A stretch of 64,000 nucleotides of DNA, from assembly GCA_009103225.1 (NCBI GenBank), contig RHPI01001037.1, forward strand, positions 248,001 through 312,000. Reading direction: 5' to 3'. The stretch is from Chlorokybus atmophyticus. Its lineage: Eukaryota; Plantae; Mesostigma and Chlorokybus algae. Below are positions 19,700 through 60,500 of this stretch, in pieces. Positions within the stretch are counted from its first letter, which is position 1, and each line of letters begins with the position of its first letter. A program made the position numbers and the translations under genes. Below the pieces are notes generated by a model. It made no database searches, had not been told where the DNA came from, and worked only from the letters and a program-made list of their open reading frames with translations.

Positions 19700-20688
19700 T
19701 CACGACTTGGCGGCCTCCTCAAAGTTCTCCACCAGGTCGGGCACATCATCGTCTTCCTCCTCGTCATCATCCTCTGCGTCCGCAGCGCCCGAGGGGGCCT
19801 CTGCGCCAGCACCCTGCTGCTGGTACTGCTGCGCGATCTTCTTCAGATTCGCGAGGCTGTCCGGCCCTGTGGTCATGCACACATCAGTGAACATCCAACC
19901 CGTAACAATGCCACGTCGGCCACTTGCTGAACTACAATGACAAATTCCAACGACACAGTGGAGATAATGGCAAGGAATGTGGCGCAAGCCCTCATACCTA
20001 GCTGGTTGATGATGGTCGGCAGCAGATCTTGCAACTCTGCGCAGCCAAGTCCAGGTGTGAGTAAGAGAGAGAGGGAGAGAGAGAGATGTGTGCACGCCAC
20101 GGGAAGTCACAGGACGCTGCTTCAAGCAGTGTACACGTAGGGCGGTGCATGCTGGCGCGCAGTACAGCTAGATGCGCACGCTAGCACGTAGTCTTCAAGA
20201 GCACACGCTGGGCCGCGTCTGCGAGTGTGACAGGCGCCAATGCTACTGACCCCAAAATGCCTCGACTTCACCACGACCAGCCGACCAACACGGTGGCGAC
20301 ACAAGGCAAGGGAAAAGGGCCCACAGCATGCAGCCAATTGCCCGTCCCCTGCCCCATGCGGCATGCAAACACACACGCAACGGGGCCACATGCAAGGCCG
20401 CCAGCGCTTACTCTTGGTCTGGCAGGCGCCGGAGACGACGTAGGTGTTGGCGGCAATGGAGGCCTGCACCTTGGGCTGCGAGAAGTGGATGACGGTGTCG
20501 TCCTTGAAGATGTTAACCTCCTCAATGCCCGGGATGGCGTTGACGCCGAGGCGCTTGAGCGTGCCCTGTAGGCGCTTGTCGTCGGTGGCCGCTGAGCCCT
20601 TGTGCACTGCCTTCTTCTTCCGCCGGACGGAGCCCTTGCCGCCCGTGCGCACGGCCGAGGCCATCTTCATCAGCCTCTCGCGATTCAT
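19700..20688 (-). CDS. BTF3: Nascent polypeptide-associated complex subunit beta (BTF3), three exons
   Basis: [26 protein letters not shown]...[52 protein letters not shown]; exon 2 [13 protein letters not shown]; exon 3 [11 protein letters not shown]...[17 protein letters not shown]. Confidence 0.96.
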
Positions 20689-35500: not shown

Positions 35501-36208
35501 CAATCGACCATAATGAATGGCTATTTTGAGTAGGGACTCTCTACCCAATCGGACTCGGGGTGATTGGTTTGTATACCATGGCAATAAATAGAGCAAATGT
35601 TAATAAAGTAATTAAACAATGCTCGTATGTTATTATGGGTGTGTGTTTTTGGAATTCACAGTTGGATGACAAAAAATATTAAAGAGTTTAAAACCGGGCA
35701 CAGTGGTATATTGATTTGTACTCCGCTGCAGCAACTTAAAGACGCGCTAAGAAAATGTTTAGCGCAAAAACACAACACCCCAGGTAGTGTCATCATGAGT
35801 GCTCACTCTTCAATTTCTATAGTCATTGGCGTGCTTTGTTATAAAAAGGAGCCAACGGCTGCACCTTTTCAAATGAAGGCACTACATTATCTATTAAATT
35901 GCAAATGTGGTGCGAGTATAAAACCAATCACCATGAACAAAAGATGATACTCGTTGACTATGATGTTCAATTGTATTGTTAATCATTGCGGATTTTCGCG
36001 TTGGTTGATGGTGGTACTCACCTGGCCGTATACATGTACATGTACGCTGCGATGATGCCAGCATCTTAGGTTTGCACTCTGCAAGTGGTGTTGGCCGGAA
36101 GAACAGACACTTAATGTTGCTCAACTCGAATGTCCGGAAGCCTTGTTCCATGCCCTGCTCCGTGTATGCACAGGCATGCATTATGGAGTTGTCTATCAAC
36201 ACCAAGAT

Positions 36209-37210
36209 CACGGCGAAAAGTAATTTAGAACTAGGATTCCACGAAACAGAACCGGTCCTGGTATGAACGGCCGTGCCAGGGAGGCCGCGCCGGAAGCGTG
36301 GTCCGATGAGATCCGTGCCAAGCATGGTGCGGATTTCATGGCGGCAGGACGTCCGCACCATGGTTTATTCCTGATGCCGCTGGTCATCAAGCTACAACCA
36401 GCCTAAAAGATGCCACCGCAATTCAGGCGTCCACGACTGCGAACCGCGCCTGGTATGACATGTCGTACCCAATCGCGCGGCCTTAGTGCGGACATCATGA
36501 TGCGAACCCGTACGGTCAATTGGCCGCAGTTAAGTCGTGCACCTTTTGCTGCTTCAACTAATTGAGATCTAACTCGGTTAATTGGCAGCTGCTAAGCCGC
36601 GCACCTTTTGCTCCAACTGACCGCACACTAGCCTCAGTCAATTGGCCACAGTTAAGTCGCCCACCTATTGCTCCAACTCCAACTGACCACGAAATAGTGT
36701 TGGTCAGTTGACCGCAAGTAGTAGGGCGCGCACCTTTTGCTCCAACAGACCGAGAAGTAGCCTTGGTCAGTTGGCGGCAGTTGGGTCGCACCTTTTGCTC
36801 CGCGGCTCAGCGAGGTAAAAGGTGCGACCTAATTGCAAAATAAAACCACAGATTTTACCTTGTTCACATATTGGCCGCGGTAAGGCGCATCACTTGTATG
36901 CCGCGTGCCTGGGTTCGAGTTTGGACGAGGACACCTCAAGTAGGTTACCTCGCGCGCGCGGTAATAATGCTAGTTTGTTTTTCAAGCTGCTTTTTCGTTT
37001 GCTCGGGTAACAATATTAAGCTTTAACTGTTATCAGATTAATTTTGGCGCGGTCAGCACCAAACCTGTGGTGACAGTCGCGAACATCAGGGCCATGGTTG
37101 GTTTTCGCGGTTACACGCCAAGTTTTGACCTTAATCCGCGGCTTCCACCGCTACTGCCCCCTAGTGCGGACGTCCGCACGATACATAGTTTAATACTTAT
37201 TTTCGCGGTG
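36209..37210 (+). mobile_element. Non-autonomous TIR-like element R1, copy 2
   Basis: Starts cacggcgaaaagtaat and ends aatacttattttcgcggtg (imperfect TIR); same internal order as 21627-22774. Confidence 0.75.
36872..36925 (+). pseudogene. tRNA-Thr-like Pol III cassette inside R1 (also on the minus strand at 21975-22027)
   Basis: TGGCCGCGGTAAGGCG (box A/D arm), CTTGTA or CTCGTA anticodon-like loop, GGGTTCGAG (box B). No pairing acceptor stem found. Confidence 0.5.
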
Positions 37211-38841
37211 AATTTGTCGGTTTTGCTGCATCATTATCCAACGCGATCGGGGCCGAGGAGACAAGTTTGGATACACTGACATTGCATGCAAAGATGTACA
37301 CTTCATTGACGTTGTCAGCGGTTCGGACAAATTTATATTATTGTCATATGTGAGAATGTATACTTCATAAGGTGTGTGTCAAGATTATTACTTTGCATTG
37401 TTACAAACGCTACTAATTTTATGACCTCATCATTGCTAAATTCAACCCCACTGCCTATCTATGGTTTGCCCCGCGGCCTGCAAGCAACAGGCAGCTAGTG
37501 CATATATGACCCCAAAAGGGAATGCACACGACTCGTTTCACTCATGTGACATGAGTGAAACTTCTCCAACTCACTGCCACCAGCGTTACTCACGTAGGTG
37601 ACGTAAGGAGCTTACTGTAAATATGCCGACCAAGCTAGCCTTGTTATTGGATACATGGCAGGTTGCACACAGTTATCATCCTCAAGTCACTCACATATTG
37701 AAGCTACCGGTACCGTGCCTGTGTGTATATATATACACACACACATATATATGTGTACATATGTGTAAAGTAATATCAAATGCGTCTACCGGTAGGTATG
37801 TATATTTTATAGGTATATCTATACATACATGTATGTGAATTTAATATATGTATATATGTATAAACGTCTATTTAAATTACCTACCACAGCTCAGTAGTGG
37901 CTACCATTGCAGCGGTGCATGTGAAATTGATTGCGGCACATGAGTCAATTGAGGCAACCGCTAGTACTCGACACACCTTGTGCAAGTGCTCTGCAGCGTG
38001 TTTTGTGTTGATGTAGTCGATGCACGCCAACCCCGTCTTGCTCGCAAAGGTCCCGCGATGCCGTAGTGATCTGCCTACCATTGCGACATTTGTCATTGTT
38101 GGCGCCCTGCGGCCATAGAATGCCTGGTTAGATCACGCATTAATTTGAATCTTTTTTATGCGCGATCTAATTAGACATTAGTTGAGGATTCGATTAGTAT
38201 TAAGTTCAATAAAAGAAGGATACCGAACTGCATGCACGCCATCTACTGCACTCCAATAGTTGATAAATAATAACTCAGCTGTGACCAAGATAGGAAAAGA
38301 TAGAAACTTGTACCTCGGTTGCCATTGAATACTCGATTAAGTCATGGCTTGAACTCTAACCAAGTTGTGGTTACAGCCAGACGGTCGGGGGGCCATTTCT
38401 ACCGGTGTTTGTCCGGGTTCAAGGCATACAACTAGTGACTGAAGACCTATTGTAAGCAACATACACATATAAGTTGAGTGCAATAGCAATAGCAATTGCA
38501 CTAACCAATGCAATAAGTTCATTTAAGCCTTCTTGCTGTAGTCAATGCTAATGCGGAGTGGCGTCCATGTGCTCCGAAAGGACTTAAGACGCTTGTAAAT
38601 CCAAATAATGAGGACGAAAGGCTTCTGGGAGCCAGCTGCATTGACACATAGAACTGCTGTAATTCTATCCTTCTCTCGCTTGCCCCATCCAGCCTTTTCA
38701 ACAACTAGAGTATAATGCGAAAGTGCTATATGAAACACTCCGGTTTCGTCCATGTTTCACAAATCAGTAATACGTCTATTTAGCTAGCATCAGTAATACG
38801 TACATCTAATTATTAAGCTAGCATGCGAGGCTATCTACTGC

Positions 38842-39340: not shown

Positions 39341-41641
39341 TGTTGAGAACTAGTGATGCGCCTAGTGTGTGTGTATTTGCCTCTTACATACAAGTGTGCA
39401 CACAGTAAGGACAAGTGCAACAAGCACGCCAACTATGAAGAGATCGTGCGACCCACTAAATTAAGCAGTATATAGTGTCTTATATACTATGCTACTAAGC
39501 ACTAGTCAACTCTAATCAACTCAGGTCAAAGTCAACACTAGTCAACACTAGTCAATGGTCAAAGTCAACGGTCAAAGTTAAAGTTGATTATGGTTGACCG
39601 TAACTGCCGTAACTCCTGTAACTCTCGTAACTCCCGTAACAATCAAGGTTAAGATGATCGTACCAACTACATGTAGGCGCCGCCTATATATGTACTTTCA
39701 ACAAGCTATAACATTTAGCACTCCCACGCGAGCAGCTTGACCTTGAACTCCAAGTTCTTCTCGCAAGCTTACCCATATTAACTTACTCCATTGAACACTC
39801 CCACGGATGTGTTGCTCCCACGGACTTGGTGCTTGTCTCCATGACACCATCCTTCTCCTCGTGCTGCCAGCAAGACTACAAGGTTCCAATACTCCTTGTT
39901 TCCTCCTCATAGTCGTCGCATCAGGTTCCACCACGCCACGCCTGACCTTGCTCAGGTGGTATCGAAGACTTCCTCAATGGCAAACTATGCTATAAACTAC
40001 ACTGCGCTCTCTACCTTAGCAATGCTGTAGCATAGTGTAGGCCGTGCAAGGGTTGATCAGACCCTTCTACCAAGGAAAGCACCCCTCCCATCTCCTGTTA
40101 GCTAGCTATACAACCCAGTCTTTGCATGCCAATCAAGTGAAGTGTTCTAACTAGTACCGCACACTTGTGTGTTACCAAAAAACAACCCCACAGCAATGCA
40201 ACCTCTAGTGTATGCAGCTCAACACCAGCAACTTCTCAGGCTAGCAGTAACTCTCACAGACCTTTATGTCTGCGACCTCCGTCTACGCACGTCCATCACG
40301 CGCCCTTGCAGTGGGAGAGGACGGACGAACACCATCCATTGCAACTTCTTAAGGTCCTCACCAATGTTACAAAGCAATCGCCATTGTGGCGTGCTCCTCC
40401 TTGGTTGCCTCATCGTGGATCCTCTTCTGGCACTCGCGAATGAAGTGGCCCTTCAGCTTGCAGTAGTGACACTCTTCGTTACGTGATGGCTTCCCACCAC
40501 CTGCTTTGCTCCTGCTTCGTGTGTGTTGAGAAGATAAGGCAGCAAGTGCGATAAGCTCTCCACCATCTTTTATCTCCTGAACATCCAACTTGCCTTCCAC
40601 AGCTAGCAGCTTAGGCACTACATCAGCAAACTTCAAAACCACATATGAGGACTCAAACACAGTTACTAGCGTAGCAAAGCTCTTTCCTAAGCCAGTTTAG
40701 ACTGCCCACATCACCTCCTCTTCCTTCACATTATGGCCCATTGCTGCAAGGTCTTGCCAAAGCTCTCTTGCACGCGAGATGTACTTTTGGATTTGCTCTT
40801 TGTGCTCCCTCTTTAGAAGTGTCAGCTTGCGTCTCAGCTGCAACTTGCGCGAGTTGCTGTTGGCCTTGAAAAGGGTGTCGAAGACCTCCCACGCCTCACG
40901 TCGAGTCTTGCAATACGCAACATGAGGGAGATGGAAGTCTTTGACGTGCAAGCCTATCAGCGCAAAAGCTGATTGTGAGTTCTGTGTCCAGGTACCAGTG
41001 TCACATGTTCTTAGCCGCAATTGTGTGAAAGAGGTTGGGTCGACTAAACTACGAAGTTTCTTGCGGATCAGCACCAACTTCATCTTCAGCAATTATGAAG
41101 CATAGTTGTGCAGGTTAAGGGACTCGATGGGCATCCTATCCGTGTTAGCCATTGCTTGCTACACAATAGTACAACTCACCCTTTCCCCAAAAACACTCTA
41201 CTAGTAGGCGCCTATGCTCAACACTTTCTCTCACTAGCACAAGCGAGTGTGGGCCCATAAATGTTGAGAACTAGTGATGCGCCTAGTGTGTGTGTATTTG
41301 CCTCCTACATACAAGTGTGCACACACTAAGGACAAGTGCAGCAAGCACACCAACTATAGAGACAATGTGCGACCCACTAAGCTAAGCAGTATATAGTGTC
41401 TTATATACTATGCATGTAAGCACTAGTCAACTCTAGTCAATTCTGGTGAAAGTCAACACTAGTCAACACTAGTCAATAGTCAAAATCAACGGTCAAAGTC
41501 AACGTTGATCATGGTTGACCATACCTGCCGTAACTCCCGTAACTCTCGTAACCCCTGTAACTATAAAGGTTAAGCTGATCGTACCAACTACATGTAGGCG
41601 CCGCCTATACATGTACTTTCAACAAGCTATAACATTTAACA
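39341..41641 (-). mobile_element. Internally deleted Ty1/copia element (gag retained, most of pol deleted), 380-bp LTRs
   Basis: LTRs 39341-39720 and 41262-41641; PBS ttatgggccca; gag AFALIGLHV...EAWEVF...QKYISRARELWQDL; knuckle CHYCKLKGHFIREC. Only protease, GAG-pre-integrase and RNase H tail relics remain. Confidence 0.88.
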
Positions 41642-43309: not shown

Positions 43310-45430
43310 TTAATGCAATTGGCTCAGCGAGCGTGCCACTTGTGCTAGCATCCTGTCTAAGAGCACTCGCAGTGCAACAGTTCTGTATGGTGGTCTAATG
43401 ACCAGCATCATACAGCTGATGCTTGATGCCACATTGCGCAGCTGCCGTAAGGTGAGCTTACAATGCTCTGAGATGGGGCAGTCTTTGGTGCCGATGAAAG
43501 CCTCCACATCATCCGAGAAACTCATATATGCGGCCACTGTGATGTGTGGGGGTACTTCCTGATCATCATTATCATCCACAACACACTGCATTGTAAGTGC
43601 CCATGCATACACAAGCAAACACACACACTGCAAAGAGATCCCGCACCTTCAGTATCATTAGGCTCAGTGGTGGACCCCTCAACGCCTCTTATGCTTTAAA
43701 GGTTGTCTTCAATTTGCTCAGCTTCGGTTGGGAGGGTGTTAGCGATGTGCACAAACTTAGCCGGGGAGAGCACTTTCACACGTGGAATGGAAAGACGCTG
43801 CATGATGTCCCCAATCTCTTGTACAGCAGCCTGCTCGAGTGCGTCAGTGTCGGGAGTGAGCGCGTGCTAAGCAGGAGGGGTGATGACGCTCTTCCTCTAA
43901 TTATTCAATATTATGATCGCAATGAGCTGCCTATACGCCTAGCGACACCATGTGATTGCTTCCCTCAGCTGCATTGTCATCGTGCGCACATTGGTTGTCG
44001 GGTCGGCATCATATTGCTGCAGCAAGTACGCAACAAGCTTGCGCTTGTATTATCTACGAACAACTTAAGAAAGCACTACGTATTCCAACGAACAAGGGGG
44101 GTCTCGGGGGTCCCCCCCTCCCGATTTTCTGCAAGTTTTTAATATCCAAACTCGGTTTGTATCATGAGCAATGCACCAGCATACATGGCCTTGAACGCAG
44201 CAATAATGCCTTTGTCAAGAGGTTGAATATTGCTGGTTGTGTTGGGAGGCAGGAACAAACACTTCATGGTGTCCACCTGCAGCGTCTTGAACCTTTCTCC
44301 ATGCCCGTGACCCTATACTTGCAGGTGTGGGTGGAAGAATTGTTGAGCAACAATAACACATTGCGCTTCTGCAGCTTTATCTCAAAGTTGAAGTTGCAGA
44401 GCCAGCGAGGAAAGATCTGAACGAGACAATGCTAAGTCACACAAGAACTTACAATTACACGTGTGGACTTGTAGATTGCACTAACAGACTTGCCAACTAG
44501 CAACATTGCCAAACATCTTACCTAAGCCTACGTCCAAGCCTTCAAGTTGTTCTCGTTCTCCACAACAATGTGGATGGGAGTTCATGTGCTCCCAAAAGAC
44601 CTAGGCCTTTTCTAAGTACCAATAAGCCAAAGGGAATACTTCATGGAGCCAGCGGCATTCACATAGAATACTATCGTGAACCTATTCTTCTCTCTCCTCC
44701 CCCTGTCAGTTCTTCACTTGCAGTGACCAATGTGCGATATGGATGAGCACGGTAGAACACCCCGCTCTCATTCATGTTAAAGGTGTTGGTAGCGCCAAAC
44801 TCTGGCAAGTCAGCTCGGGTCATGTTGACTCCTTCTTTATCTGCATCATTGGCTTCCCCATGCAATGGTGTAGAAGAGATGCCATGATGCTTCTTGAATC
44901 AATGCACCCGCTGTTGAAGGTTAAGCATATGAGGTTTGCTAATATATTATGCTTATAGTACATATTAAAGGTTAAGCATATGAGGTTTGCTAGTATAGTA
45001 TGCTTTCAGTACAGTGAGCTTGTTGATGTGACTTGGACCATGTGCGGCGGTTACGCAATGGGAGATACAGTCAACATAAGTTACGGGAGTTATCAGAGTT
45101 ACGGTCAACTTTGACTTTGACCATTGACTAGGGTTGACTAGGGTTGACTTAAACCCTTGACTAGTGTTGACGAGAGTTGACTTTAACTAGGTTTGACTAG
45201 TCTTTTCTAGTGTTGACTAGCTTAGTATATAAGTCATTGTATGTGGCGCATACAGGTGGAACTGCAACAGGAACATACTTCTCTTTGTTGTTGACATGCT
45301 ATTGCACGCGTTATTCCCCTAGTGTGAGCACATGTATGAGGTAGGGTGCATACATGCACACTAGTTTTTAAGAAAGGCGATTTGTTCACCTACATCATGC
45401 TGAACTGTAGCAATCTTCGCCTTACCGCAC
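43310..45430 (-). mobile_element. Decayed pogo/Tigger-like transposase with an inserted solo LTR
   Basis: FKKHHGISSTPLHGEA; FNMNESGVFYRAHPYRTL; KRNVLLLLNNSSTH; MKCLFLPPNTTSNIQPLDKGIIAAFKAMY at about 44180-44280. Confidence 0.85.
44912..45373 (+). mobile_element. Solo LTR (copia-related family 2)
   Basis: Reverse complement of 61113-61607, including the same internal duplication and TTGAC ladder. Confidence 0.8.
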
Positions 45431-45599: not shown

Positions 45600-46499
45600 C
45601 ACCGCGAGCGGATGTCGACAGCGGGCGCCCGCCGCCTCGGCCGGACGCCCTCCCCAGGCGCACACGCGCGCGCGGCCGCCGCCTTCCGTGATCGGGATCG
45701 ATATCTTCCGTCCGAAGGACCATAACACCCGCAGTGCGGGGCGTAGCGCGTCTCGGTCCCTAAGCACGCCGCACGGGCCCCGCACGGGCCGGGCTGGTCG
45801 CGGTCCGGGACCCTGCTTCCAGCCGAAAGGCCCGCATTCAGAGCGGCCGGGGTGGGCACGTTATTCAACCAGCCGACCACACACGTACCTCTGACACTAG
45901 GCAAGTACCTTTTTCATATATCATTCACGTACGTATTAAAGCCGCACATGCGGCTATTACATTTGTCTATGTCACATTCGCAACAAGCATGTCTTTTATC
46001 AAGCAGTGCAGTTCGGCGTCATCTTAATGTGTGTTGCTAAGACTTTTATGCTGCACATTGCATGTGTTGAATGACAACATGTATATTTGTATGTATTTAT
46101 AATAATGGATATCATACATATTGATCGATTCTCAAATTGACAAAGTCAATTTTAATGATGTGCTTTTGAGTTCTACATCATCACTGTACCTTGTATAATG
46201 TACATGGCCTAAGCTGCATAGTCAAGCTAGACCCGAAGTTGCAAGCTAAGCACGAGGTGAAAGGGCAGGGGGAGGTTGCGATTATATAGAAGTGGTAATG
46301 ATGAAGTCGTGTACAATTCATCTTTATATTTAATGCATAAGAAGCTGCTTCAATATCTCGCGTATCTTTGCTCTTTTGTGGCCTCCATCTACAGCTGTGA
46401 ACCATTGCTCGCGAACCTGCATACGAGTACGACAATTACGTCTTCATTTGGTATGGTTTACAAATGCTTGACCCACTCACAAACCATAAGCATAAATTG

Positions 46500-47400
46500 C
46501 ATTGCACCTGTGTGGCATTAAATAAGTGCATGCTGCTCGGGCCAGCGGTGGTCTTGCGTAAAAATTCATGCAAGTAATGCATATGGCTCGCAATCATCAT
46601 TATTGGATTGTGGCAGCACTTGTACACTCAACATTATTACTTAAATGCAAAGAACTTAACATGTCAATTGACTAGTCAACTTCACGCTAACAGAAGATCT
46701 TTCACACACACCTCGGGCTCGAGGATTGGCATATGATCTGCAGCAAACCGGTTGCCGCTTATGTACCCTCGCGTCTTTACCCACATGTGTTCCAACCATT
46801 CTCGCACGAGAATATCACCTTGCTGTTGAATTCCTCTTCGAGAGCCCAAATGTACAAAGAATGGGTGACAAGCAGCGTCTTGTGTTGCTCCCGGGTTGCA
46901 CACAATCATCATTGACCAGTGCACACTGCAATGCAGAAACGATCAAAGTTTTTAAAATACATAGCTCATCGTCACCCTGAACTGTAAGTATTGATATCAA
47001 GCAGCTTACTTGAGTAGATTGGCAGGGATAACAAGGATGTCAACATCAAACAAATCGCGAAGCCAATGGCTGACATCCTTGAAGTTGCAATTGGTCTTTG
47101 TAATTTGAGCAAGTTTCCAGTACAGACTGGTTAAACACGTGTGCACCATGGGCTTGCGCTGTGCATCCACAACCTCTTCAAGCAAGTACCTGTGGTACAG
47201 CATGTCCGAATGCAGTAAATCTTGTTTTCGGTTTGTTGTCGTACCTGCAGTAGAAGTCGACGAGCGTAGCATTAATCTAATTACCGTTTTTTAGCGTATC
47301 CACACCGTGCTGAGTTATCTCCATGCAGTTCACGACATCATCAAATGGATATCGAATGAAATGCGGATGCGCTATCCTAGCATGATCACCAGTAGCATTG
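46500..47400 (-). pseudogene. Ulp1/SENP-family (peptidase C48) SUMO protease domain
   Basis: RYPFDD..MEIT..VDTLKNGN*IN..VDFY; LYWKLA...VSHWLRDLFDVDILVIPAN; HWSMMIVCNPG...FFVHLGS...REWLEHMW; QSNNDDC catalytic Cys motif. Confidence 0.75.
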
Positions 47401-50400
47401 GTAAGATTAATTGGGTCAACTACCGCTGCTTTTCGTGTATACTTGACATCAGGCTTAGGCTCTCGCTCCGGCTCGCGCTCCACCTCTTATTTCGGCTCGC
47501 GCTTTAAGTCTTGCTCCAGTGCCCACTTGAACTGAGGACTTGAGTCGCGTTCCGATTGTCGCGCTTGGCTGCGCTTGGGCAAGGCTGAAGCGTTGCGTCT
47601 GATAAACAATCTACAAGTTATATAAGTGCGCATGTTGTTGAGCATTATCTGAAAAAGGTATAACATCATAAATATATACCTGATTCTCTCATTATGCACA
47701 CGGGACATCGCAATGTCGCGATCAGCCGGGTCAAGGTGATCGAATGCGCGCTCAATGTAGATGTTAAACTTGTCTTCGACATACTTGCGTTTGGATGGAA
47801 CCTATAAACCTATAAACCTATCAATGAAGTGTTCATATGTAATGCGTTACTTACAAGGCTGATGATGTGGTTTGTGCTACTGTCCCAAGTTATGCAATAT
47901 ATAACTTGCGACACATACCGTCCATATACTTTGCAATGCGGCTCTGAGATGGTCTGCAAGCGCATTGATATGGCATTTCCAATCCGTGCTCACATGCTTG
48001 TTTTTGGCAATCTGCACTCGCATGCTCTTAAGATATTGGATGGCCTGTTTCTCTTTGTAAGCATTGCTGACATGGGATCAATGTTGGCTAATGAGCCAAA
48101 TAATCTCAAAGATAATGGGCTTGTTTTTGCATGTAGCGCGTTAACATTGGTGTATGCGTAGTTTGCTCGTCGTATTTAAGGATAACTATAGAATCAACCG
48201 TACTTGCTGTTCCATGTGTGTTTGCAATTTCCCTGACCCTCTTTGGTGCCAGGCACTATGTAGATGTTGTCCTTGCCCCATCTCGCCATCAACTTTATCA
48301 CAGGCAACTTGCCATTTGGTCCGGTATATATGAACTCGTTCCACAATGCTGCAATGTACAACGATCATCACAAGATATTGTTGCTCATGTGCCACTTCAT
48401 TAATGCCGTCGTTTAATTGATATACATATATTGTAATGGAACATGCACGTGTCATTATGAAGATCACAAGTGAAACGCACCTTGTACACTGTTTGGTGTC
48501 TTTGTAAAACAGTACAAGTCCCTCTGCTGCTCGGATGCCATCCACGATGTGGTTAAACGTGGCGTGCTCAAAGGCACGTCCCCCGCAATATCACTCGCCA
48601 CATTTGCTGCTGCCCCGGACCCGCTGCATTAAGGGTTGAAAGATTATTGAGTTGCACGTGCGCATTGTTGCCATTGCACAGACTCAGCTGTTGCAATACA
48701 AAATATGATACTGCTATGATCAATTTACATACCAGATGCAAATGTTTCATCGTGCCCCGATGTTTCAGGCTAGCCTACATACACATAATCAGTCCGATAT
48801 ACAAGAGTATGGTATGTGCAAGTGTTCAACGATGGCTATTGTATTGCACATTACGCTAGAGTTGATACCTGTGGGCTTTGCGCAATATGTACAATACGGT
48901 GTGCTCACCGGCTTAACACAGTTTTCGCAGAAGCGTTCACTGTTGCCAGCTGCTTCAGGCCAACCTGCATACACACAGTGAGTGATATGCAAGAGTATGG
49001 TATATGCAAGTGTTCAACAATGGCTATTGTATTGCACATTACATTAGGCTTGATGCCTGTGGGCTTTGCGCAATAAGTACAGTAAGGTGTGCTGGCCGGC
49101 TTAGCACATCGTCCGCAAAAGCTTCCACATGCATTGAGCGATGCTGCGTGCTGCGCTTTGTCTGGACGCTTTCCATGTGGTGATGTAGATGTTGCCGCTG
49201 ATGTAGATGCTGCCTTGGGCTGGGCATGATCCGATGTCGCGGCGGTTGATGATGCTTTAGGCTGCATGTGACTATTGGCTCACGTGCCGCCGCCGCGTCG
49301 GCCGATGCAATGTCGTTAGCGCAGTTGGAATGGAACCAAGCCATGCCTGCCGACGGCGGATATGTTGGAACGACGTGTCATGTACATTAGTTATTGTCGT
49401 AACTCTAGTAACGGTGCAAGAACGTACCAGTGCATTCCACAGTTTATCAAGCCGGTCATTGACATTGCGTGCATTTGCATGCATATCATTGCCAAGCTGA
49501 AGCAGATTGGTGGGCATATTAAACGGATTTCCAGCGCATTTAGTGCGCTAGTATGCGGACGCATGGTTTGGTACGCTTTCGGTATACTCCAGGAACTCAT
49601 CCCTAAAAACACTATTGTTTTTGTACGTGTCTACGTCCACATGCTATGTGCAAGTTGCGAAAACAACGTATTCTTGTGAAAAGAATAAGTAGTAAACATT
49701 GTTTACTTACGAGCAAAAGTGGTGATGCCCTTAACATGGGTGCGCAGGTGGCCATTCCTGTTGCCGAAAAGCTGCATGTTGAATCGTAATTTGTCGCATG
49801 TTCAACATGAACCTAGCAAATGCTTGGCCGGCAATCTCCTATACCATACATGTTAGTGAGTGCGATGTAATTCAGACAATCACATTGCAGCGTGCCGCAA
49901 TGTGCATAATGCACGCCAATAATAAGCCCGCTGTAATGCTATCAGCGATGCAGCCAGCGTGTTGATATCGTTGTGCTGGTTGCACCACATATACACAGGT
50001 ACAAGTGTTCTATTCTCGTTTTACCGGTTGGTCCTATAAACGCTATAATTGCTCTTCTAACTATGGGAAGATGTTCTTGGTAAAATTTACAGGCGCAGTT
50101 GTGCATGTGCGCGAGTGGATAGGAGACCGCGTATTAATTGGATGCCCGGTTAGGCATAAGCCTACGAAAGTCGTGCTGCCAGTGTAACTCATCACCATAC
50201 TTTTGTTGTCATATTTAGAGTGAAGCGACCTGCTTTGGCTATATCCGCTTGCATGATGCTGCGCATAATAAAAAATTTACGCTTGTTGATACAACATGTG
50301 CTGTTGAATTGCACATGTTGCACATGCGGCAACGTACCCGTGCACATTCAACTCCTAAGCAGCAAATTGCCGCATTGCATGTAGTGCTTTTGCAGTCTTG

Positions 50401-51414
50401 ACCTCGTTGCTCTGAAATACACCTTTTATGAACTGTTAACGTGCCTCCTGACTAATTGGAATGGTGTGAGAGCCGTCATTGTCTGCTAGGGAAGAGCAGA
50501 AAATAGGATACCTGTGTACGTCATTATCAGTTGGCAGTTGGCATTCACAACAAAAACATGCAATGCCATCACGCAACCCGCGTACCACTCGTCCTTTTTT
50601 GATAGATTTTGGGGTGCTTCTCCCTGAATATGATACCTATATCGTAACCAGTCACCAAGTGCGCTGATGGCATCCATTGCAGTGTCCATACCATGATACC
50701 ATAATGCGTAATCCAAGTGTCCCATCTTTGTTGCAGTAGTGTCATTATTAGTCGTTTTACTCATAATTTAACAATGTATTCAATACCAACGACAGTGCAC
50801 CTAATTGCGTTTGCTGTCGCGCGAGACAACACACAAGCAATAGATTGGATCTGGGCCTACAGCATAATTTCGAAGCCACATATCAACCAGATCGCTCAAC
50901 CGCATTGGGCGCGCGTCGCCTGCTCGTAACATGGCCTGCCGCATCAGCAGCATCGTCGCTTTGCGCAGCAATCCGATTAGCAATTAGCTACCTGCGTATC
51001 ATGCAGTAGCATGTTTGCTTTTGTTGTTGAAATTGCACTCACGACATTACGTGTACATATAGCCATCATACTCCAGTTTTATGTATGTTTCTCTAGACAA
51101 TCGCTTGTACGTAGATGAAAGGATTGCGTCAGCCGCGGTATTTCACAGTGGGTTCATTAGTGCTCTGTCAAAGGCACACAATGCATGTGTGTTGGTTTGC
51201 ATCTGTGTTACAACATGTATGCCACAGTTTCAGGTGACATGATAAACATGTACTCACTCTTTGCGCCGCTCTTTATCTCCCTCAAGGATTGTGCGGTTCA
51301 TGGTATGGATGACATCGTAACTGTGGTTTAAGATTGAGATAAAACTTGGATTGTAACCTCAACTTAGCATCTCGTAGCGCCGCAATATTGGCTTTCATTG
51401 ATTGCAGGGTCGAT

Positions 51415-51807
51415 TGGAAAGAACTAGTGTGCATGTATGCGCCCTACCTCATACATGCGCTCACACTAGGGGAACAACAAGTGAAATAGCATGTCAACAA
51501 CAAAGAGAAGTATGTTCCTATTACAGTTCCACCTGTATGCGCCACATACAGCGACTTATATACTAAGCTAGTCAACATTGCAAAGGACTAGTTGACCCTA
51601 GTCAAAGTCAACTCTGGTCAACACTAGTCAACGGTCAAAGTCAACTTTAGTCAACCATAGTCAATGGTCAAAGTCAAAGTTGATCATAACTCCTGTTGAC
51701 TGTAATTCCCATTGCGTAACCGCCGCACATGGTCCAAGTAATATCAATAAGCTGACTGTACTACAAGCATACTATACTAGCAAACCTCATATACTTAACC
51801 TTCAACA
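51415..51807 (-). mobile_element. Solo LTR (family 2) inserted in the Crypton-like gene
   Basis: gaactagtgtgcatgtatgcgccctacctcatac...gtcaa ladder...cttaaccttcaaca, colinear with 61113-61607. Confidence 0.82.
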
Positions 51808-54163
51808 TGTCTTGTGGCTCGTGTGGTGTCGTGCGATGGCACTCGCGGGTTCGCCGTCTGCACTTACGGCAGCCATCATTATGGCCTACTGCGGCACATT
51901 TAACGACATGACCAACGTTGATAAAAATAAAACAAAACCATACCTCGTGGCTCATTATTGGCGTTAGTCGTATGACCTGCTGCTGACATATTCAATGCAC
52001 GCCCTTTATCATAACCACGGGTTGCTGGTTGCGCAGTGTGTTGTGTCGTGCGAGCCTGAGATTGCGGGATACCTGCTATGTGATTATCGTTTATAACTAA
52101 TACTTATGCTCTCTTTGTTATAGTGGGTGTATACGTTACAGTGCAACTCATAAGGTTGTGTGCTTACATCTGCTGCTGGGTCTTCTGGGGAGCCCTGCGT
52201 CATTGGTGCATGCATGGCTTCGTAACCTGCACATAGTGTTGCCACGATCATTATGAGAGCACTCAAGACCAACTGACCAGCAGCATGCATAGTTACACCT
52301 TGTGGCTTATTGGGTACGTCAACAGGATGTGCGGGCGCTCGATAAGATGTTGTCTTCGGCAACGACCACGAGATATTGATTGTAGCATAATTTGCGGTGC
52401 GCGAGGCTGCGAAGTACCACCCGTCTCATATCGAAGCTTTTGAGCCTCTTCTTTCGCGCGTCGTGTTTTGGCTTGCCAGCTATTGACTCTGTATCATTTG
52501 CTTCGCTCTCGATCTCGCTTTTAAACTTCGACCATGCGATCATGATATTCGGCCTTGCGCTTGCGATCCGCTTCCGCTAATTCATCTAACACAATATATC
52601 ACACAATTTCTTATAACGCTTTTTTTTGTTTAAAAAAGAGCGTTACACAACATACCTGTTGTTGTATGCTGTGATATCAGGTGTTGCTTATGTTGTTGTT
52701 ATTGCTTTTGTTTTTATTAAGGTTGTTGTTGTGTTTAAGCACAGCAAGTTGATCTCTCATTTTAGTAACGATATCTTTCATATCAGCCAAGCAAGTTTCC
52801 ACAAAAGCATAAATGAAGATCGCGCTCCTCCGCTCTCTTCTTTCTGGCAACATAGACCGCCATCAGCGACGCTTGAGGGGTTGACATCCCCTCGTTTGGC
52901 GGTAAGATAATGTGATGCCCCAAGTGTGCTGCGAATATTGAAATCATGCGCATTGCATTTTTAGGTACCCTCAGAGCGTTAGTCGCACATCGCTGTATAT
53001 AACATCAGCGAACGCCACCGCGCAGAAGACGAAACCGGCCTGCAGTCATCTTCCAACGACGCAGATAGTGATGCGCAGCTGGGGGAGGGGGCCGAGGTGG
53101 GGGGAGAAAGGCCAGTTAATGTAAATTCGTATCTGTAGCAACAGGCCCCTCTGCATTAGATGAGACTTTTTATCACGCTCTTTTTTTGTAGTAACACTGT
53201 TATCGGCATGAGACTTATGTCTCATGCCGCTACCAGCCGCATGGTGGCGCTGCTATCGCAGCGACCACCATAGGCAGCGGATTTTTTGCTTTGACAGCCG
53301 CCACGGCAGCGGCGGCGGCTGTAGCATTGGCTGGTGGTGATGTTGGGGTAGGGAATTAAGGGAGGAGGGGCACTCCCCCCTTACATTGGTATCGGCACAC
53401 GGGCTGCAAGGGGCCTGTGGGAGGGGCGGCGGCAGGCGACATGCATTGTGGGGGCGGCGGCATGCGGCAGCGGCGACGACAGCAACTAGTTGTAGTTATC
53501 AATTAGTGTTTTGATAACTGTTGTGGTTCAACGCTGCTGGTGCCTAGCCTAGCCTAGCCTAGCATGCCATGCCAATCCATGCCATGCCATGCCATGCCAT
53601 ACCTGCATTTCCTGATCTTGTTTATTATTATGGGAAGGGAGGCGACCATCCAGGCCCCTCCCTCCGATATAGATTGCAAGATACAACATAGTGATCATAT
53701 AAAATTATACTGTGTGTTGTGTGCTAGCCACCACATGGACTCGTGGTGGTGTTAGGGTTCTTATCTATTTTCGATAATTTCCTTGGGGGCAGTGCGGTGG
53801 CAACATCGACTGCCTCGTTATCGCCAGTAAGCGCGATGCGGCTGATAGAGCTTCTTCGAAGCAGTTGACGTTAAACTCTTGACTCACAATTCGACAACAT
53901 CAGCCTGTAGAGTCATTCCGACGACATTTCGGTACCCCGAGTGTACATTATAATTGTGAGTCAAGCTGACTTGTACAAAGTTAAATCTTTAAGCAGCCAT
54001 AGCTTGTGAACCATCGCATGCATTTGCATACAGCTTATTCCAAAGTGCTTACCTAGTTAGGAGGTGTTGTTGTTGGGAGAGCTCTTTTTTAGGCTGTATA
54101 CTCAACATAAACCCCTCAAAACTTGACGAGACAAAAGCACGAAGATTTGCCACTTTTTGCAAT

Positions 54164-54546: not shown

Positions 54547-57500
54547 TGTTCAAGGTACTTGTTTAGGCGCCTTAGTTAAACATCTACGATCATCACCTTG
54601 ACAGTTATGCTCAGCTGCCGTTATGGCAGTTATAGTCCACTTTGATCAACAATGACATTGACCATTGACTTTGACTTGTGTTTACTAGTGTTGACTTCGG
54701 CTAGGGTTGACTAATGTCAACTAGCACTTACTAGTGTACTATATAAGACACTATAAAGTTGTGCAATACAGCTAGATTCACTTTCACACACACCAATGCT
54801 TTTGCATTGTTGCTATCGTGCAGTCTCAATAGGTTATGGGCCCACACTAGAGCTAGCATAGCATACACGAGTTGATATAGCTTGGGGAGGCGCCATCCTC
54901 ATTGCAAACTTGCAAGGGAAGCATAGCGACCAGCTATGACAAGGTCAACATTGAGCCACTAGACCTCAACAACAATGGGACATGGAGCATCCGGATGCAA
55001 ATGCTACTCATGCACAACAACCTATGGTTGGTGGTGGATCCCGAACAGAGCACTCCCTACATGGCGGACGCGGACGTCGAGGAAAAATCCAATTAGGCAC
55101 TTGCGTTGCTAGGATTGAATGTTATACAGCATCACTTAGTTAGCCCTTATTGTAAGACTGCTAAAGAGTTGTGGCAGAGTCTTGCAGATGTGTATACAGC
55201 CAAGAACACTGCAGGAAGTTGCAATCGAGGAAGCAATTGAATGCTTTCTAGGTTTTGCTGAACCTGTCCTCAAGTCCATCTCGCAAGCTAGGCAGTTGTG
55301 GGATGACTTGCTCGCAATTAGTTTAACAGTGAAGGAGGTGGAGGTCGTTTAGGCAATCCTCGCTGGCCTACCAAAGGAGTACAAGATGACTGTTACCATT
55401 ATGGAGTCATCAAATGAGGAGCTCACCCTTGAAGCGGTTACCCCACGCCTATTACAAGTCAAAAAATGGGCATCCACTTCACGCCATACTGAGGCTAAAG
55501 CTGTAGCATTGGTGGCACAATCCAATTGACGCCCCGGCAACAACAGTGGTGGTGGGAAGAAGGAGACGCGTGCTTGCCACTAGTGCAACAAGAAGGGACA
55601 TTTGAAGAAGAATTGTCGAAAGTGGAAGCGCGATTAGCAACAAAAACAAGGTTATGACATGCAGGCTGTAGCACTTGCTGCCAGCACAACTGCTATCGAG
55701 AGCACTTGGTTGTTTGATTCCGCGTGCACACATACGACCCCACGCAGATATGGATCTCAAAAATATCATGCTCGGATCGATGCTGCTGGTGTGAAAGTGA
55801 GCTTTGGCAACAAGCTACACTTGCAAGCTGTGGGAGTAGGCACCATCATCCCACACACTGTGGTGGCGGGTAATACACATAAAGTGGCCTTGCAAAAGGT
55901 AATCTACGTGCCGGGACTAGCCTCCAACCTAGTCCTTGTTAGAAGAGCTACAATTGGGGGCGCCCAGGTTGACTAAACTGCCAAGAGGGGTCGAGTCGAA
56001 ATGAACAACATTGTTGTTGCAAAGGCACATTGCGGGAGAGTATGTACTGCATCACATTGGATCGGCACCATGCGTTGTTCGCAACAATCACTGCGTCGGC
56101 TACAGCTCATCTCTAGCATCGATGGTTAGGACATCTGTGGTGGGACAACCTGGTAAGACTAGTTGCTGAGACCGTTATGAAGGGAATTGGCAACAAGGAG
56201 GAGGACATCAAGGCAGCAAAAGGTGGTTTGCAAGTGTGTAAACGTGCATATTAAGCAAGATGTCTAGGCAGCCTTTTCCTACCTCTACCCGCGCCACTTC
56301 AGCACCCATATTGCTTGTCCACATGAAAGTGTGCGGTCCCATGCCAGTCGCGTCCAATGGAAGAGGGTGGTATGTTGCCACTTGTTTGGATGACTTCATC
56401 AAGTTATCAGCCATGATTCCATTTCCTGCCAAGTCGAAGGTTGCTGCTATTATGAAGAGGAAGGTCACCTTATTTGCAACACAAGCAAGGATAAATGTAT
56501 TGGCATTTAGGCGTGATGGTAGTTTTGAATACCTGAACCAAACCACGGAGAACTACTTGGAGGAGCACGGCATCAAGCATAAAACCATGGCACCTTACAC
56601 ACTTAAGCAAAACGGTGCTGCTGAGCGCCTCAACCGCACACTTGTGGAGCATATGCGTGCCATGCTTACCGATGCAGAGCTTGCCAAAGCCTTTTGGGCT
56701 GAGGCCTTTGTTACGAATAATTACATTCGCAACAGGTCACCTACAAGTAACAAAGCCGAAACCCTGTGGGAGTTGTTCTAAGGTGAGAAGCCTGATGCGA
56801 CGCACATGCGTGTGTTTGGAGCTAAGGCGCTTGTGCACATCCCCAAACACCTGAAAAGAAAGCTTGCGAACGTGCAGAAAACCGGCGTTTTTGTGGGTCA
56901 GAAGCCTAACTCCAAGGCATATAGGATCGTGCTTATAGGTGGCAATAATGTGGTTTGAAGGGATTTTGCTTTCGACGAGAAGTTAGGAAGAAGCCAACAA
57001 CACCTTCAACACTTGGAGAATGACATAGCAGAGCCTGAGGTTAGCATTGCACCAATGGACATGGTTGTTCTCGAGGAGGTCATTCTTGTAGAGGTTGTTC
57101 CTGGCATTGCACCACACCATGAGGTGAAAGAAGTTGCACCCACGGAACAATTGGATAGGCGCTACCCTGCGAGACACAAAGCGCCACCGCACTTACTGCA
57201 GCGTATTTAGTCTCTAAGCGCTGCAACCAGCGAAGAGAAAGAGCCGACCATCTATTATGTGGCCACCACAGCTCCGGATGCCGCGTTGTGGCGCAAGGCC
57301 ATGGATGAGGAGATTGCTTCGCTACACGCCAGTAAGACTTAAATACCTGAGCAGGTTCTATAAGGCGTCAAGCACTTGACAGGTATAGGCCTATACCTGT
57401 CAAGTGGGTGTACAACATCAAGCGCGACGACCAGGGCAACATTGAGCGCAATAAGGCGCGACTTGTAGCAAGTGGCTTCCTTCAAAAGGAGGGAGTTGAC

Positions 57501-60500
57501 TACAAGGAGGTAGTTGCACCTGCTAGCAACCACACAACCTTCAGGGCACTACTCGTCAAGGTTGCTGTGGAGGACTTGGAGCTGCACTACCTCATATATA
57601 TGGCAATACCCGGATGCCTTGCACACGCCAGCGTCGCACCAACTGCTTTATCACCTTCGTAAGCACGAAGCACGCCGTGCTCAAGCCGAATGGCAACGAG
57701 CAGAAGTTGTACGCTTTGCCCGCAAGTGAGAACCCCAGGTAGCCCCATAAGGCGGGGTGAATGTCCACATGATGATATCCGGACTTTAAGTCCGTTGAGA
57801 ACAACCAGTCCTCACGTTGCAGCAAGTCTGGAATGCTGCGCACATCCTTATACTTGAATGGCGTGTTCACCAAGAAGGAGTTAACATAGCGCAAGTCCAT
57901 AATGAGGCGCAACTTGCGGCCATCATCCACCACATTGAGTGGGCTCACCACGAGGGGGGGTGTCACACACTCTTGTGCAGCCCCACTATGCACCAAGTTG
58001 GCAATGGCCGCTGCAGTGAAGTCCGAAAACTCATGTACACCCTTATGGTTGGTGAACGCCCATTCGGGGGGTGGGTCAGCCGCCCATGGTAGCTTGTACC
58101 CGTACTCCACCCAGGACAGGACCATAGTAGACTCGCAGAATTGCTGCCATGCGGGCAAGGCCTCCCGTAAGCGGTGCCTTATATAAGGACCTTCCACAAT
58201 CAAGTTGCTAGGTGCGCGTGCAAACTCATGGTGTTTCATCCAATCCTCCACCAACTCCGACTCAATGGAAGTGTAGTAAAGGGCCACAGTGCACACTGCC
58301 TTCGTTTCCGGCCCCCGCATGTGCAACAAGTGAGTGCAAGCACTCCCACTTTGTAACGGGCATAACTTTTGCAAACGATGTCCAATTAGGACGTTTAAGG
58401 TGTCAAAAGAAAGCGTTTCTCAGCGCTCAAACCCAATAGCGGCCCGGTCCAAATAATAGGAATTTGCATCTAGCCGAGGCCGCAAACGAAAGTTATAAGC
58501 CAAATAATGTGCAACCATAGCAAACCGCGTTTAATTTCACGTTCCTTGGCTCTGCACAAGCGTCGCTGTGCCACAATAATGAACTCAAAGTTTCATGCCA
58601 TTCAGAGGTCATCTGAGACCTTAACAAGAAATTATAGGCACTACATGGGCACAAGTGTACAGCTACAAGGCTGTCACATCATCTACAGAGCTATGCTACC
58701 AAACTAATGGCCGCCACGGCCTGCAGAGGGCTTACGGCAATAGGCACGCAGGTGCCCTGGCTCCCTGCAATTGTAGCAAGTGCGGGAGTCACGTTGACAC
58801 CCAGTGGAAGCGGCCTGAGACTGCATAGGAGCGGTCCTGTAACTGGTATGCCCCGCACCAGATGCTTTAGACCCAGAGTAGCGGGGGGGGTACTGGCCCC
58901 GCCCCTTGTTGGGATGGTAGGCAGGCTTTGCCTTGGGCTTGGGCTGCGCCGCAGCCACGTCCTTCAACGCCTTCTTCAGGCGCTTTGCCTCATCATCATC
59001 CACGGCGAGGGGGTTGCGCACCAGCTCGTCCACGACCTTCCAGTCATGCTTGTTGGCCACTTCCACATAGTGGAATTGCTTACACACCTCATCCAATGCT
59101 GCGCATAGAGCACATATGAGCAACACGCGTTGCATGTTCATACGGGCTCAAAGCCACCGGGTCTAGCGCCAAGCGCACCCCTATTCCATTCCCGTACCTA
59201 TTATGTACATATGCGCATGCAAATGCAGATGTTGTGCCCTATTGTGCTCGTTCCCTTGCTATGGGGTAGTCATAATGTGAATACAGGGGTGAACATACAA
59301 TGGTGTTAAGTGCGGGCCCCTCCCCCCCGTCCGGACATGGGGGGAGGAGGGATGCGGAACACATGTAACTAATGGAATAACTGTGCATCTATATAGATAT
59401 CGGGCTGGCGCCTTCAAAAGGCCCATGATACACGCATGTGCAAGTGTGCGTGGGCTAAGTCCGCACCCACATGATGATTTGCCAATATGCGCGTGCGTAT
59501 GATGATGCACAACAAAGAATGAGCCCACCTTTCATGTTCTCCTTGCGGCCTTTAGCGAAGTGGGGGTCCTCGGCGAGGTGAGCGGGCACACGATCGAAAG
59601 AGGATGCTGCCGAGCCGACATGAGCCGCAACCTCAAGGTGTTGTTGCACCCGCTTCTTCAAGTTTTCCTTCCAAGGTAACGGGCTCGCTGAAGCGGGTGG
59701 CCATGGCTCCCACTCGAGCATTGGGGTTGGTGGAGTCGCCGTTGTCACGATGAAGGATGCTCACAAGTAGGGGGTGGTTGGGCTCGTCAACGGGCTCATC
59801 ACGAGGGATGGCGGGCGCCTTCCCACGCTTGAGGCGCATGTTCTCCGCCTCCAACTCCTCCAACCTCCGTGCCATTGCCTCCGTGGGTATCATGAACGGG
59901 GTAGAAGCGTTGGAGAACGGGCTTGCCTCCCTCTTCCTACGCTTGTAGGTGACGAAGGGCGGGTCCTCGTCGTCCTCATCCTCCTCACCACCACCATCAC
60001 CTTTCTTGTTTACCTCCTCCTCTCCCCTCCCCACGGGGGGGCGCACCTCTCCCTCCTCCCTCGCCGCTCGCCTCTCCTCCTCCTCACTCAAGGTGTGGCG
60101 ACGCGGACTCTTAGCCCGCGACAAGCGATTGGCGGCTAGCAACGCCGCCGCGGCCGTAGCCGCCACCTCTTCTCCATCATCTTGGGCACGCGCTTGTGAT
60201 CGTGTAACCATGGTGGAGGTCCTCCTCCGTCCACACCTCCTCACCACACTCGCCACCTACGCCAAGGATGGCGCCGCCGTGCTAGGGTTTCAAGCGACTA
60301 GATAAGGAGCTTGTGACTCACAACTCACGTCTAGTGAGTGCTTGTGCCCTCAAGTGCCCAAGGCACTAGGGGCACAAGAGTCTCATAACTCATTAACGAG
60401 TTCTTGAGTTCATGGGCGCGCATTTCATGCGCTTCATGAACTCATATGACTTGGAGCTGCACTACCTCGACGTAAAGACTGCCTTTGATTATGGAAATTT

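Follow-up and report, generated by a model that had tools for sequence, protein, structure and literature searches.

A decayed C48 protease-like gene beside a CryptonF-like recombinase remnant in the alga Chlorokybus atmophyticus

Introduction

Does a gene for a C48 (Ulp1/SENP) cysteine protease belong to the transposon remnant beside which it lies, and did transposon and protease once form a single protein? The question is raised by a locus of Chlorokybus atmophyticus (GenBank assembly GCA_009103225.1, contig RHPI01001037.1, positions 248,001 to 312,000 of the forward strand), a stretch of 64,000 nucleotides that we call the window and within which all positions are counted. A preliminary description had reported a C48 protease apparently spliced onto a Crypton-like recombinase and had taken this for a new architecture. 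We found that the protease-like gene is dead and that it stands directly 3' of blocks resembling the tyrosine recombinase (YR) and the GCR1_C domain of CryptonF elements. In our judgement, there is about an even chance that a single CryptonF-type copy, old and inactivated, occupies the minus strand between about 46.5 and 51.0 kb and bears a C48 module at its 3' side, as in CryptonF-2_PS. The earlier observation is thus partly confirmed, and its interpretation partly supported.

A C48 protease-like gene on the minus strand

The protease-like gene and its putative leader can be read as follows, from 5' to 3' on the minus strand.

47801-47680, minus strand: exon VPSKRKY...RIR (VPSKRKYVEDKF...RVHNERIR), beginning directly after the acceptor tttatag
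47490 to 47801, minus strand: stop-free stretch of 104 codons (VPSKRKYVEDKF...KREPK) upstream of the C48 domain, including an ATG at 47708-47706
47679-47611, minus strand: candidate GT-AG intron of 69 nt (base-level reading)
47610-47245, minus strand: long exon comprising the linker as well as the initial C48 block, LFIRRNASALPK standing at its start at 47610
47245 to 47486, minus strand: beginning of the C48 domain (..FIRYPFDDVVNCMEITQHGVDTLKNGN, then a stop, then INATLVDFYCR), INATLVDFY being unique in the window
47190 to 47244, minus strand: GT-AG intron GTACGA...CCACAG, 55 nt, which accounts for an apparent frameshift
47010 to 47189, minus strand: C48 exon YLLEEVVDAQRKPMVHTCLTSLYWKLAQ...VSHWLRDLFDVDILVIPANLL (YLLEEVV...VHTCLTSLYWKL...VSHWLRDLFDVDILVIPANLL), aligned with SENP1, its LFDVDILVIPAN block being unique in the window
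46926 to 47009, minus strand: GT-AG intron GTAAGC...TTGCAG, 84 nt (base-level reading)
46708 to 46925, minus strand: C48 exon in which the catalytic His lies (HWS at 46921-46919), VHWSMMIV...FFVHLGSRRG
46619 to 46707, minus strand: GT-AG intron GTGTGA...TACAAG, 89 nt (base-level reading)
46518 to 46618, minus strand: C48 exon LPQSNNDDCE, which holds both the catalytic Cys (TGC 46592-46590) and the oxyanion Gln

The peptides quoted in the preliminary description (VPSKRKYVEDKF...RVHNERIR from 47801, LFIRRNASALPK from 47610, HWS and QSNNDDC) are indeed found at these places on the minus strand. Removal of the introns at 47244-47190, 47009-46926 and 46707-46619 restores the frame and gives a colinear C48 domain. 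Four blocks of the family, INATLVDFY, LFDVDILVIPAN, HWSMMI and QSNNDDC, occur once each when the 64-kb window is translated in all six frames, on one strand (minus), in family order and within a span of 670 nt. The catalytic His stands in its HW context (LFDVDILVIPANLL, then VHWSMMIV, after a '..D.L.IP.N' strand), and QSNNDDC (46610-46590, minus strand) follows the Q-x-N-x-x-D-C pattern. In shuffled windows the four block patterns gave 0, 0.005, 2.3 and 0.055 hits; they were composed post hoc, with the sequence already in view, and the joint chance is still tiny.

As for similarity searches, the exon at 47189-47010 aligns with residues 55-111 of SENP1, just N-terminal to the catalytic His, at E values of 0.38-0.68, and SENP1 accounts for 7 of the 11 chains among the PDB matches listed for this exon. 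This weak match was the sole result of the PDB sequence searches, where the His exon had none. Peptidase_C48 makes up 27 of the 30 ESM Atlas clusters nearest to the His exon (score 0.91), and the nearest of them belong to Streptophyta. Against 1.84 billion representative proteins, the same exon matched two tandem-repeat junk proteins and no close relative. The 104-codon stretch upstream had neither a match in Pfam nor a homologue in a word-indexed homologue search. Because the four blocks are colinear and unique, and because the SENP1 alignment and the C48 neighbours in the Atlas agree with them, the identity goes beyond chance. The earlier recognition of a C48 protease by its His and Cys motifs appears sound, as judged from the sequence.

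Decay of the protease gene

The protease gene is dead, with three in-frame stops and a Gly in place of Asp. The first stop, TAA at 47489-47487, lies between KREPK and EVEREPEREPKP, within the second of the two exons that had been described as leading straight into the protease; that claim fails here and again at TAG 47279-47277, which replaces the conserved Trp expected before 'INA'. The third, a premature TGA at 46568-46566, comes 8 codons past the Cys, beyond which the frame goes on through 'IFTQDH' as far as TAA 46520-46518. None of these three stops can be removed by frame-restoring GT-AG introns, and all three could be explained by G-to-A or C-to-T changes. The TAA at 47489-47487 is also present in a contig of a sequencing run that covers 47461-47619 with zero differences, and another such contig covers 46590-46752, likewise with zero differences. 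The catalytic Asp of C48 proteases is sought about 17-25 residues C-terminal to the His. At 46846-46844, in VHLGS, the gene has GGC (Gly) where the family has ..DS; we take this to be the place of the catalytic Asp, following an alignment made by eye, partly against SENP1.

The upstream Crypton-like gene

The alignment of CryptonF sequences published by Kojima and Jurka (2011, Additional file 3) served for a comparison by eye with the blocks upstream of the protease.

50804 to 50983, minus strand: CryptonF-like YR block I, ..MLRAGDARPMRLSDL..CVVSRDSKRN, resembling by eye LLRGESARNLDLPDL...QGKTN of CryF1_PI/PS
50489 to 50767 (coding about 50767-50590), minus strand: YR block 'SKTTNN...ALWYHGMDTAMDAISALGDWLRYRYHIQGEAPQNLSKKDEWY', a by-eye match
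50355 to 50435, minus strand: His-x-x-Arg block KALHAMRQFAA, resembling by eye AKTHAARG of CryF1_PI
48197 to 48364 (from 48348), minus strand: first of the GCR1_C-like blocks, ALWNEFIYTGPNGKLPVIKLMARWG, preceded by an acceptor (ttgcag) that ends at 48349
47877 to 48077, minus strand: frame of the GCR1_C tail, ..KQAIQYLKSMRVQIAKNKHVSTDWKCHINALADHL..LGQ, ending at TAG 47879-47877

By eye, the YR and GCR1_C blocks follow the published CryptonF order block by block. The second YR block, SKTTNN..ALWYHG..ISALGDWLRYRYHIQGEAP...EWY (50767-50590), resembles GKTNQFGR..RH..CPVGALALYLFWRW..EAVPDF..WY, the published pattern for the block at 50489 to 50767 being 'GKTNQFGR..RH..VE.CP.GAL..YLFWRW..EA.PDF...WY'; its conserved Arg-His reads Trp-Tyr in the alga. 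Among the catalytic residues of the recombinase, the box I Arg and the His-x-x-Arg appear colinear with CryF1_PI/PS, and the Tyr requires a change of frame. An in-frame stop at 50357-50355 cuts the His-x-x-Arg block. Further downstream, ALWNEFIYTGPNGKLPVIKLMARWG resembles IWEEYDTGIRGKPSIKHLEAKYG of Hot1 and VWQEWTTGIHGGPAVRDLEERYG of CryF1_PI, and the tail NKHVSTDWKCH, in an unspliced frame, resembles NKSLNWIAKH of CryF1_PS. Database searches added no matches: YR block I had none in Pfam or PDB, and the block at 50489 to 50767 none in Pfam, PDB, the Atlas or the homologue search. The resemblances by eye nevertheless point to an upstream gene that is CryptonF-like and decayed as well. The C48-like gene lies directly 3' of these YR and GCR1_C blocks and on the same strand, in agreement with the preliminary description.

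The recombinase and GCR1_C blocks enclose a feature without counterpart in the published CryptonF sequences compared.

48792 to 49279, minus strand: two tandem zinc-ribbon-like exons, Cys-x2-Cys...Cys-x2-Cys (Pfam DZR_2, E 6e-4, below the family cut-off)

The exon (Cys-x2-Cys-x8-Cys-x2-Cys) is duplicated in tandem at 48796-48940 and 48984-49128, the units being 188 bp apart.

Both modules of the locus are therefore decayed, the protease by its stops and its Gly and the recombinase by Trp-Tyr and the stop after His-x-x-Arg. This shared decay speaks for a Crypton copy with a C48 module, since one would expect an Ulp1 gene of the host to be intact. A duplicated and then decayed Ulp1/SENP gene of the host, unrelated to any transposon, would agree with the small spliceosomal introns and with the streptophyte clusters nearest to the His exon. 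We find it very improbable in view of the three stops and the lost Asp, the lack of a close relative among the 1.84 billion representative proteins, the location inside a mosaic of transposons, and the stop-free stretch that abuts the Crypton stop on the upstream side of the C48 domain.

One protein or two

The frame of GCR1_C keeps matching CryptonF tails without splicing and then meets its own TAG at 47879-47877. CryptonF proteins usually end soon after GCR1_C, as the alignment of Kojima and Jurka (2011, PMC3212892) shows. From this stop codon to the first exon of the protease frame there are 78 nt, both lying on the minus strand. One candidate intron spans the stop.

47802 to 47918, minus strand: candidate 117-nt intron GTATGT...TTATAG, which would connect the GCR1_C and protease frames in phase 0

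This single-intron route uses a donor ACG/GTATGT after 47919 and an acceptor ttatag before 47801. An alternative in-frame route, with introns of 40 nt (after KNKH) and 53 nt, deletes the conserved Trp of the GCR1_C tail. Among 1000 dinucleotide shuffles of the 231-nt gap, a stop-free GT-AG route was available in 34% when at most one intron was allowed and in 72% with at most two. Since so many shuffles offer such a route, the 117-nt intron is no evidence by itself, and the splicing of the protease onto the Crypton, as formerly proposed, is unproven, the more so as GCR1_C has its own TAG.

It might still be that intact copies produced a single spliced mRNA, and from it one polypeptide made of recombinase, GCR1_C and Ulp1 protease. 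The in-frame route between 47919 and 47801 would allow it, and fusions of transposases with Ulp1 are known in Ginger1 and Mutator. We nonetheless think it unlikely: routes of this kind are common in shuffled sequence, the one with the 40-nt intron loses a conserved Trp, the Crypton frame stops at a TAG as CryptonF proteins do, and C48 is part of a second Crypton gene in a 2026 paper (PMC13465315). A compound form of the idea is that intact relatives draw two products from one transcription unit, a YR-GCR1_C protein ending at the TAG and an optional YR-GCR1_C-Ulp1 fusion made by removal of the 117-nt intron (47918-47802). It would mean a YR transposase joined to a deSUMOylase and, beyond the stramenopiles, a green-lineage case of Crypton with C48, and we regard it as decidedly doubtful.

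Candidate starts in the protease frame are ATG 47965 and ATG 47708. The 104-codon stretch that opens at the acceptor suggests coding sequence extending further upstream than the C48 domain, and either gene could be its source. As for sequencing, a single low-coverage run and no RNA run were found; the short contigs are colinear with the genome and contain no joints.

A proposed CryptonF-type copy with a C48 module

How might such an element have worked? It would encode, in this order, a tyrosine recombinase, a GCR1_C DNA-binding domain and, at its 3' side, an Ulp1-like C48 cysteine protease. In intact relatives, the recombinase would excise the element and re-insert it. The protease would be a second product, obtained from its own start or by optional splicing past TAG 47879-47877. 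To judge from its family, it may remove SUMO or a similar tag from proteins of the host or of the element. This reading is favoured by the 104-codon stop-free stretch, which starts exactly at the acceptor, and by the span of about 4.5 kb, near the 4450 bp of CryptonF-2_PS.

Several observations weigh against this reading. What links the Crypton and the C48 blocks is their adjacency and nothing else, and in a locus pieced together from fragments of transposons chance neighbours are common. Element ends were not found around the Crypton and C48 blocks, and no unit of Crypton with C48 or of Crypton with pogo is bordered by terminal inverted repeats or target duplications. The domain check by Pfam that had been proposed earlier, performed on single exons, left recombinase, GCR1_C and Peptidase_C48 all without a match: no single exon matched PF02902 even at E 10, the GCR1_C blocks had no PF12550 match, and C48, GCR1_C and recombinase were all missing from the results for 40-odd stop-free pieces and exact exons. 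Pfam matches were confined to the neighbours (DDE_1, rve, RVT_1 and NAC).

Searches for relatives were also negative. No second Crypton-C48 copy is present in the 64-kb window, and two metagenome scans were blank. The word-indexed homologue searches with the linker, the YR exon and the C48 exon were blank too, and carry little weight, their scope being proteins of 0.55-1.75 times the exon length.

Alternatively, the two genes could be neighbours by chance, the C48 pseudogene being a fragment of another transposon, with CACTA as the most likely donor, that inserted beside a Crypton remnant or was truncated next to one. The region is packed with LTR (long terminal repeat), Copia-like, gag-RT (gag and reverse transcriptase) and pogo-like fragments; moreover, the Crypton frame has its own stop ahead of the protease exons, and the splice route is no better than chance. 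However, Pfam searches on the pieces detected neither a PHD domain nor a transposase of the CACTA, Mutator or Ginger kind adjoining the C48 gene, either upstream or downstream. The stop-free stretch shares the strand of the Crypton and starts at its acceptor 78 nt past the Crypton's stop codon, Cryptons that bear C48 are already known, and a second pogo-like copy in the window lacks C48. We see chance proximity as a serious, though less likely, rival, and retain the CryptonF-type copy with a 3' C48 module as our preferred explanation.

Surroundings of the locus

The transposon fragments nearest to the Crypton and C48 blocks, and a related repeat further away, are the following.

44912 to 45371, plus strand: LTR-like repeat copy A, with TG...CA ends and TTGACT sub-repeats
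51419 to 51810, minus strand: LTR-like repeat copy B, the same dispersed repeat, inverted relative to A
61115-61607, minus strand: third copy of the LTR-like repeat, upstream of the gag-RT element
44142 to 44431 (remnant about 43900-44900), minus strand: decayed fragments of a pogo/Tc5-type DDE_1 transposase (Pfam DDE_1, 29.8 bits and 16.3 bits, for a cut-off of 22 bits)

The LTR-like repeat is about 460 bp long and holds many TTGACT/AGTTACGG sub-repeats. Copies A and B, which are 86% alike, flank the Crypton and C48 blocks in inverted orientation, and partial copies are present at 39470-39711, 41391-41632 and 54643-54755. The repeat is probably an LTR family. We judged it unlikely that the inverted 460-bp copies are the terminal inverted repeats of the element: a third copy lies by the gag-RT element, the repeat has TG...CA ends, a Copia-like gag is flanked by related fragments, and target duplications were not seen. 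The ends of CryptonF elements, a group defined by YR and GCR1_C, are short terminal direct repeats of about 6 bp or, for some families, long terminal inverted repeats. Since CryptonF-2_PI has terminal inverted repeats of 602 bp (Kojima and Jurka 2011, PMC3212892), a slight chance is left that the repeats of about 460 bp are element ends. A DIRS-like reading of the unit at 45.4-51.4 kb was dropped, as it has no protein similarity to the gag-RT element.

A second, diverged DDE_1 pseudogene is present on the minus strand (36030-36244 and 38537-38768), with about 40-50% amino-acid identity to the first. No C48 gene lies near this copy (36.0-38.8 kb), which makes the pogo-like element an unlikely owner of the protease.

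Other fragments lie further from the locus. A Copia-type gag with a CCHC knuckle (40367-41092, minus strand) stands between the direct LTR-like fragments at 39470-39711 and 41391-41632. On the other side, a Copia-like fragment (55638-57659, plus strand) comprises a protease-like motif, an rve integrase and a Copia-type RT. It is abutted by an element with gag (CCHC knuckle) and RVT_1 at 57595-60256 (minus strand), on whose upstream side the third LTR-like copy is found. The open reading frame at 20122-20688 (minus strand) is intact-looking and encodes a NAC domain (81 bits) of the kind found in the nascent-polypeptide-associated complex; it is presumably a host gene.

Comparison with known systems

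The architecture itself, which the preliminary description took for new, has been known since 2011, when C48-carrying CryptonF-2_PS and CryptonS were reported (Kojima and Jurka 2011, PMC3212892). CryptonF-2_PS, found in Phytophthora sojae, is 4450 bp long, and it and related oomycete elements encode a C48 peptidase besides YR; CryptonS elements carry an extra C48 protein (Kojima and Jurka 2011, PMC3212892). C48 is also listed as a facultative second Crypton gene in a 2026 paper (PMC13465315).

Like CryptonF-2_PS, the algal locus would unite a CryptonF-type recombinase and a C48/Ulp1 protease in one element, over about 4.5 kb against 4450 bp; the two C48 genes are likened by their presence, not by sequence kinship. 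In contrast to the stramenopile element, the locus belongs to a green-lineage alga, has small introns and is a dead copy. As the Crypton-C48 pairing is already known in oomycetes, the green-lineage host would be the addition. If the pairing is true, the association of Cryptons with Ulp1 proteases extends from oomycetes to a streptophyte alga, and the locus could help ask whether the Crypton arrived by transfer from fungi or oomycetes. Its value is modest: it is a single dead copy, its linkage is unproven and its architecture was known before.

MarCry-1_FO, a fusion of a Crypton with a Mariner-type DDE transposon in Fusarium, offers another parallel, with a Crypton next to a DDE gene of the Tc1/mariner superfamily: the pogo-type DDE_1 pseudogene shares the strand of the C48 gene and lies about 1.6 kb downstream of it; unlike in MarCry-1_FO, an LTR-like insertion separates C48 and the DDE_1 gene. 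A MarCry-like Crypton-pogo composite was rejected. Neither 16-bp terminal inverted repeats nor TA duplications surround the pair, and co-mobility is unsupported.

CryptonS elements resemble the locus as tyrosine-recombinase transposons with an Ulp1-family peptidase, which in CryptonS is a separate protein. They differ from it in lacking GCR1_C, the locus having GCR1_C-like blocks, and in their TATGG-type terminal direct repeats, whereas no ends were identified in the alga. As for Ginger1 and Mutator, Ulp1-transposase fusions are known in both, and Bao and co-workers suggest that the ubiquitin-like pathway plays a part in transposition. They share with the algal locus a C-terminal catalytic domain of Ulp1 joined to, or carried by, a transposon; unlike it, they use DDE transposases and terminal inverted repeats. 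If our preferred reading of the locus as a CryptonF-type copy with a C48 module is true, it adds to the repeated uptake of SUMO-type proteases by unrelated classes of transposons: Mutator, CACTA, Ginger and Crypton.

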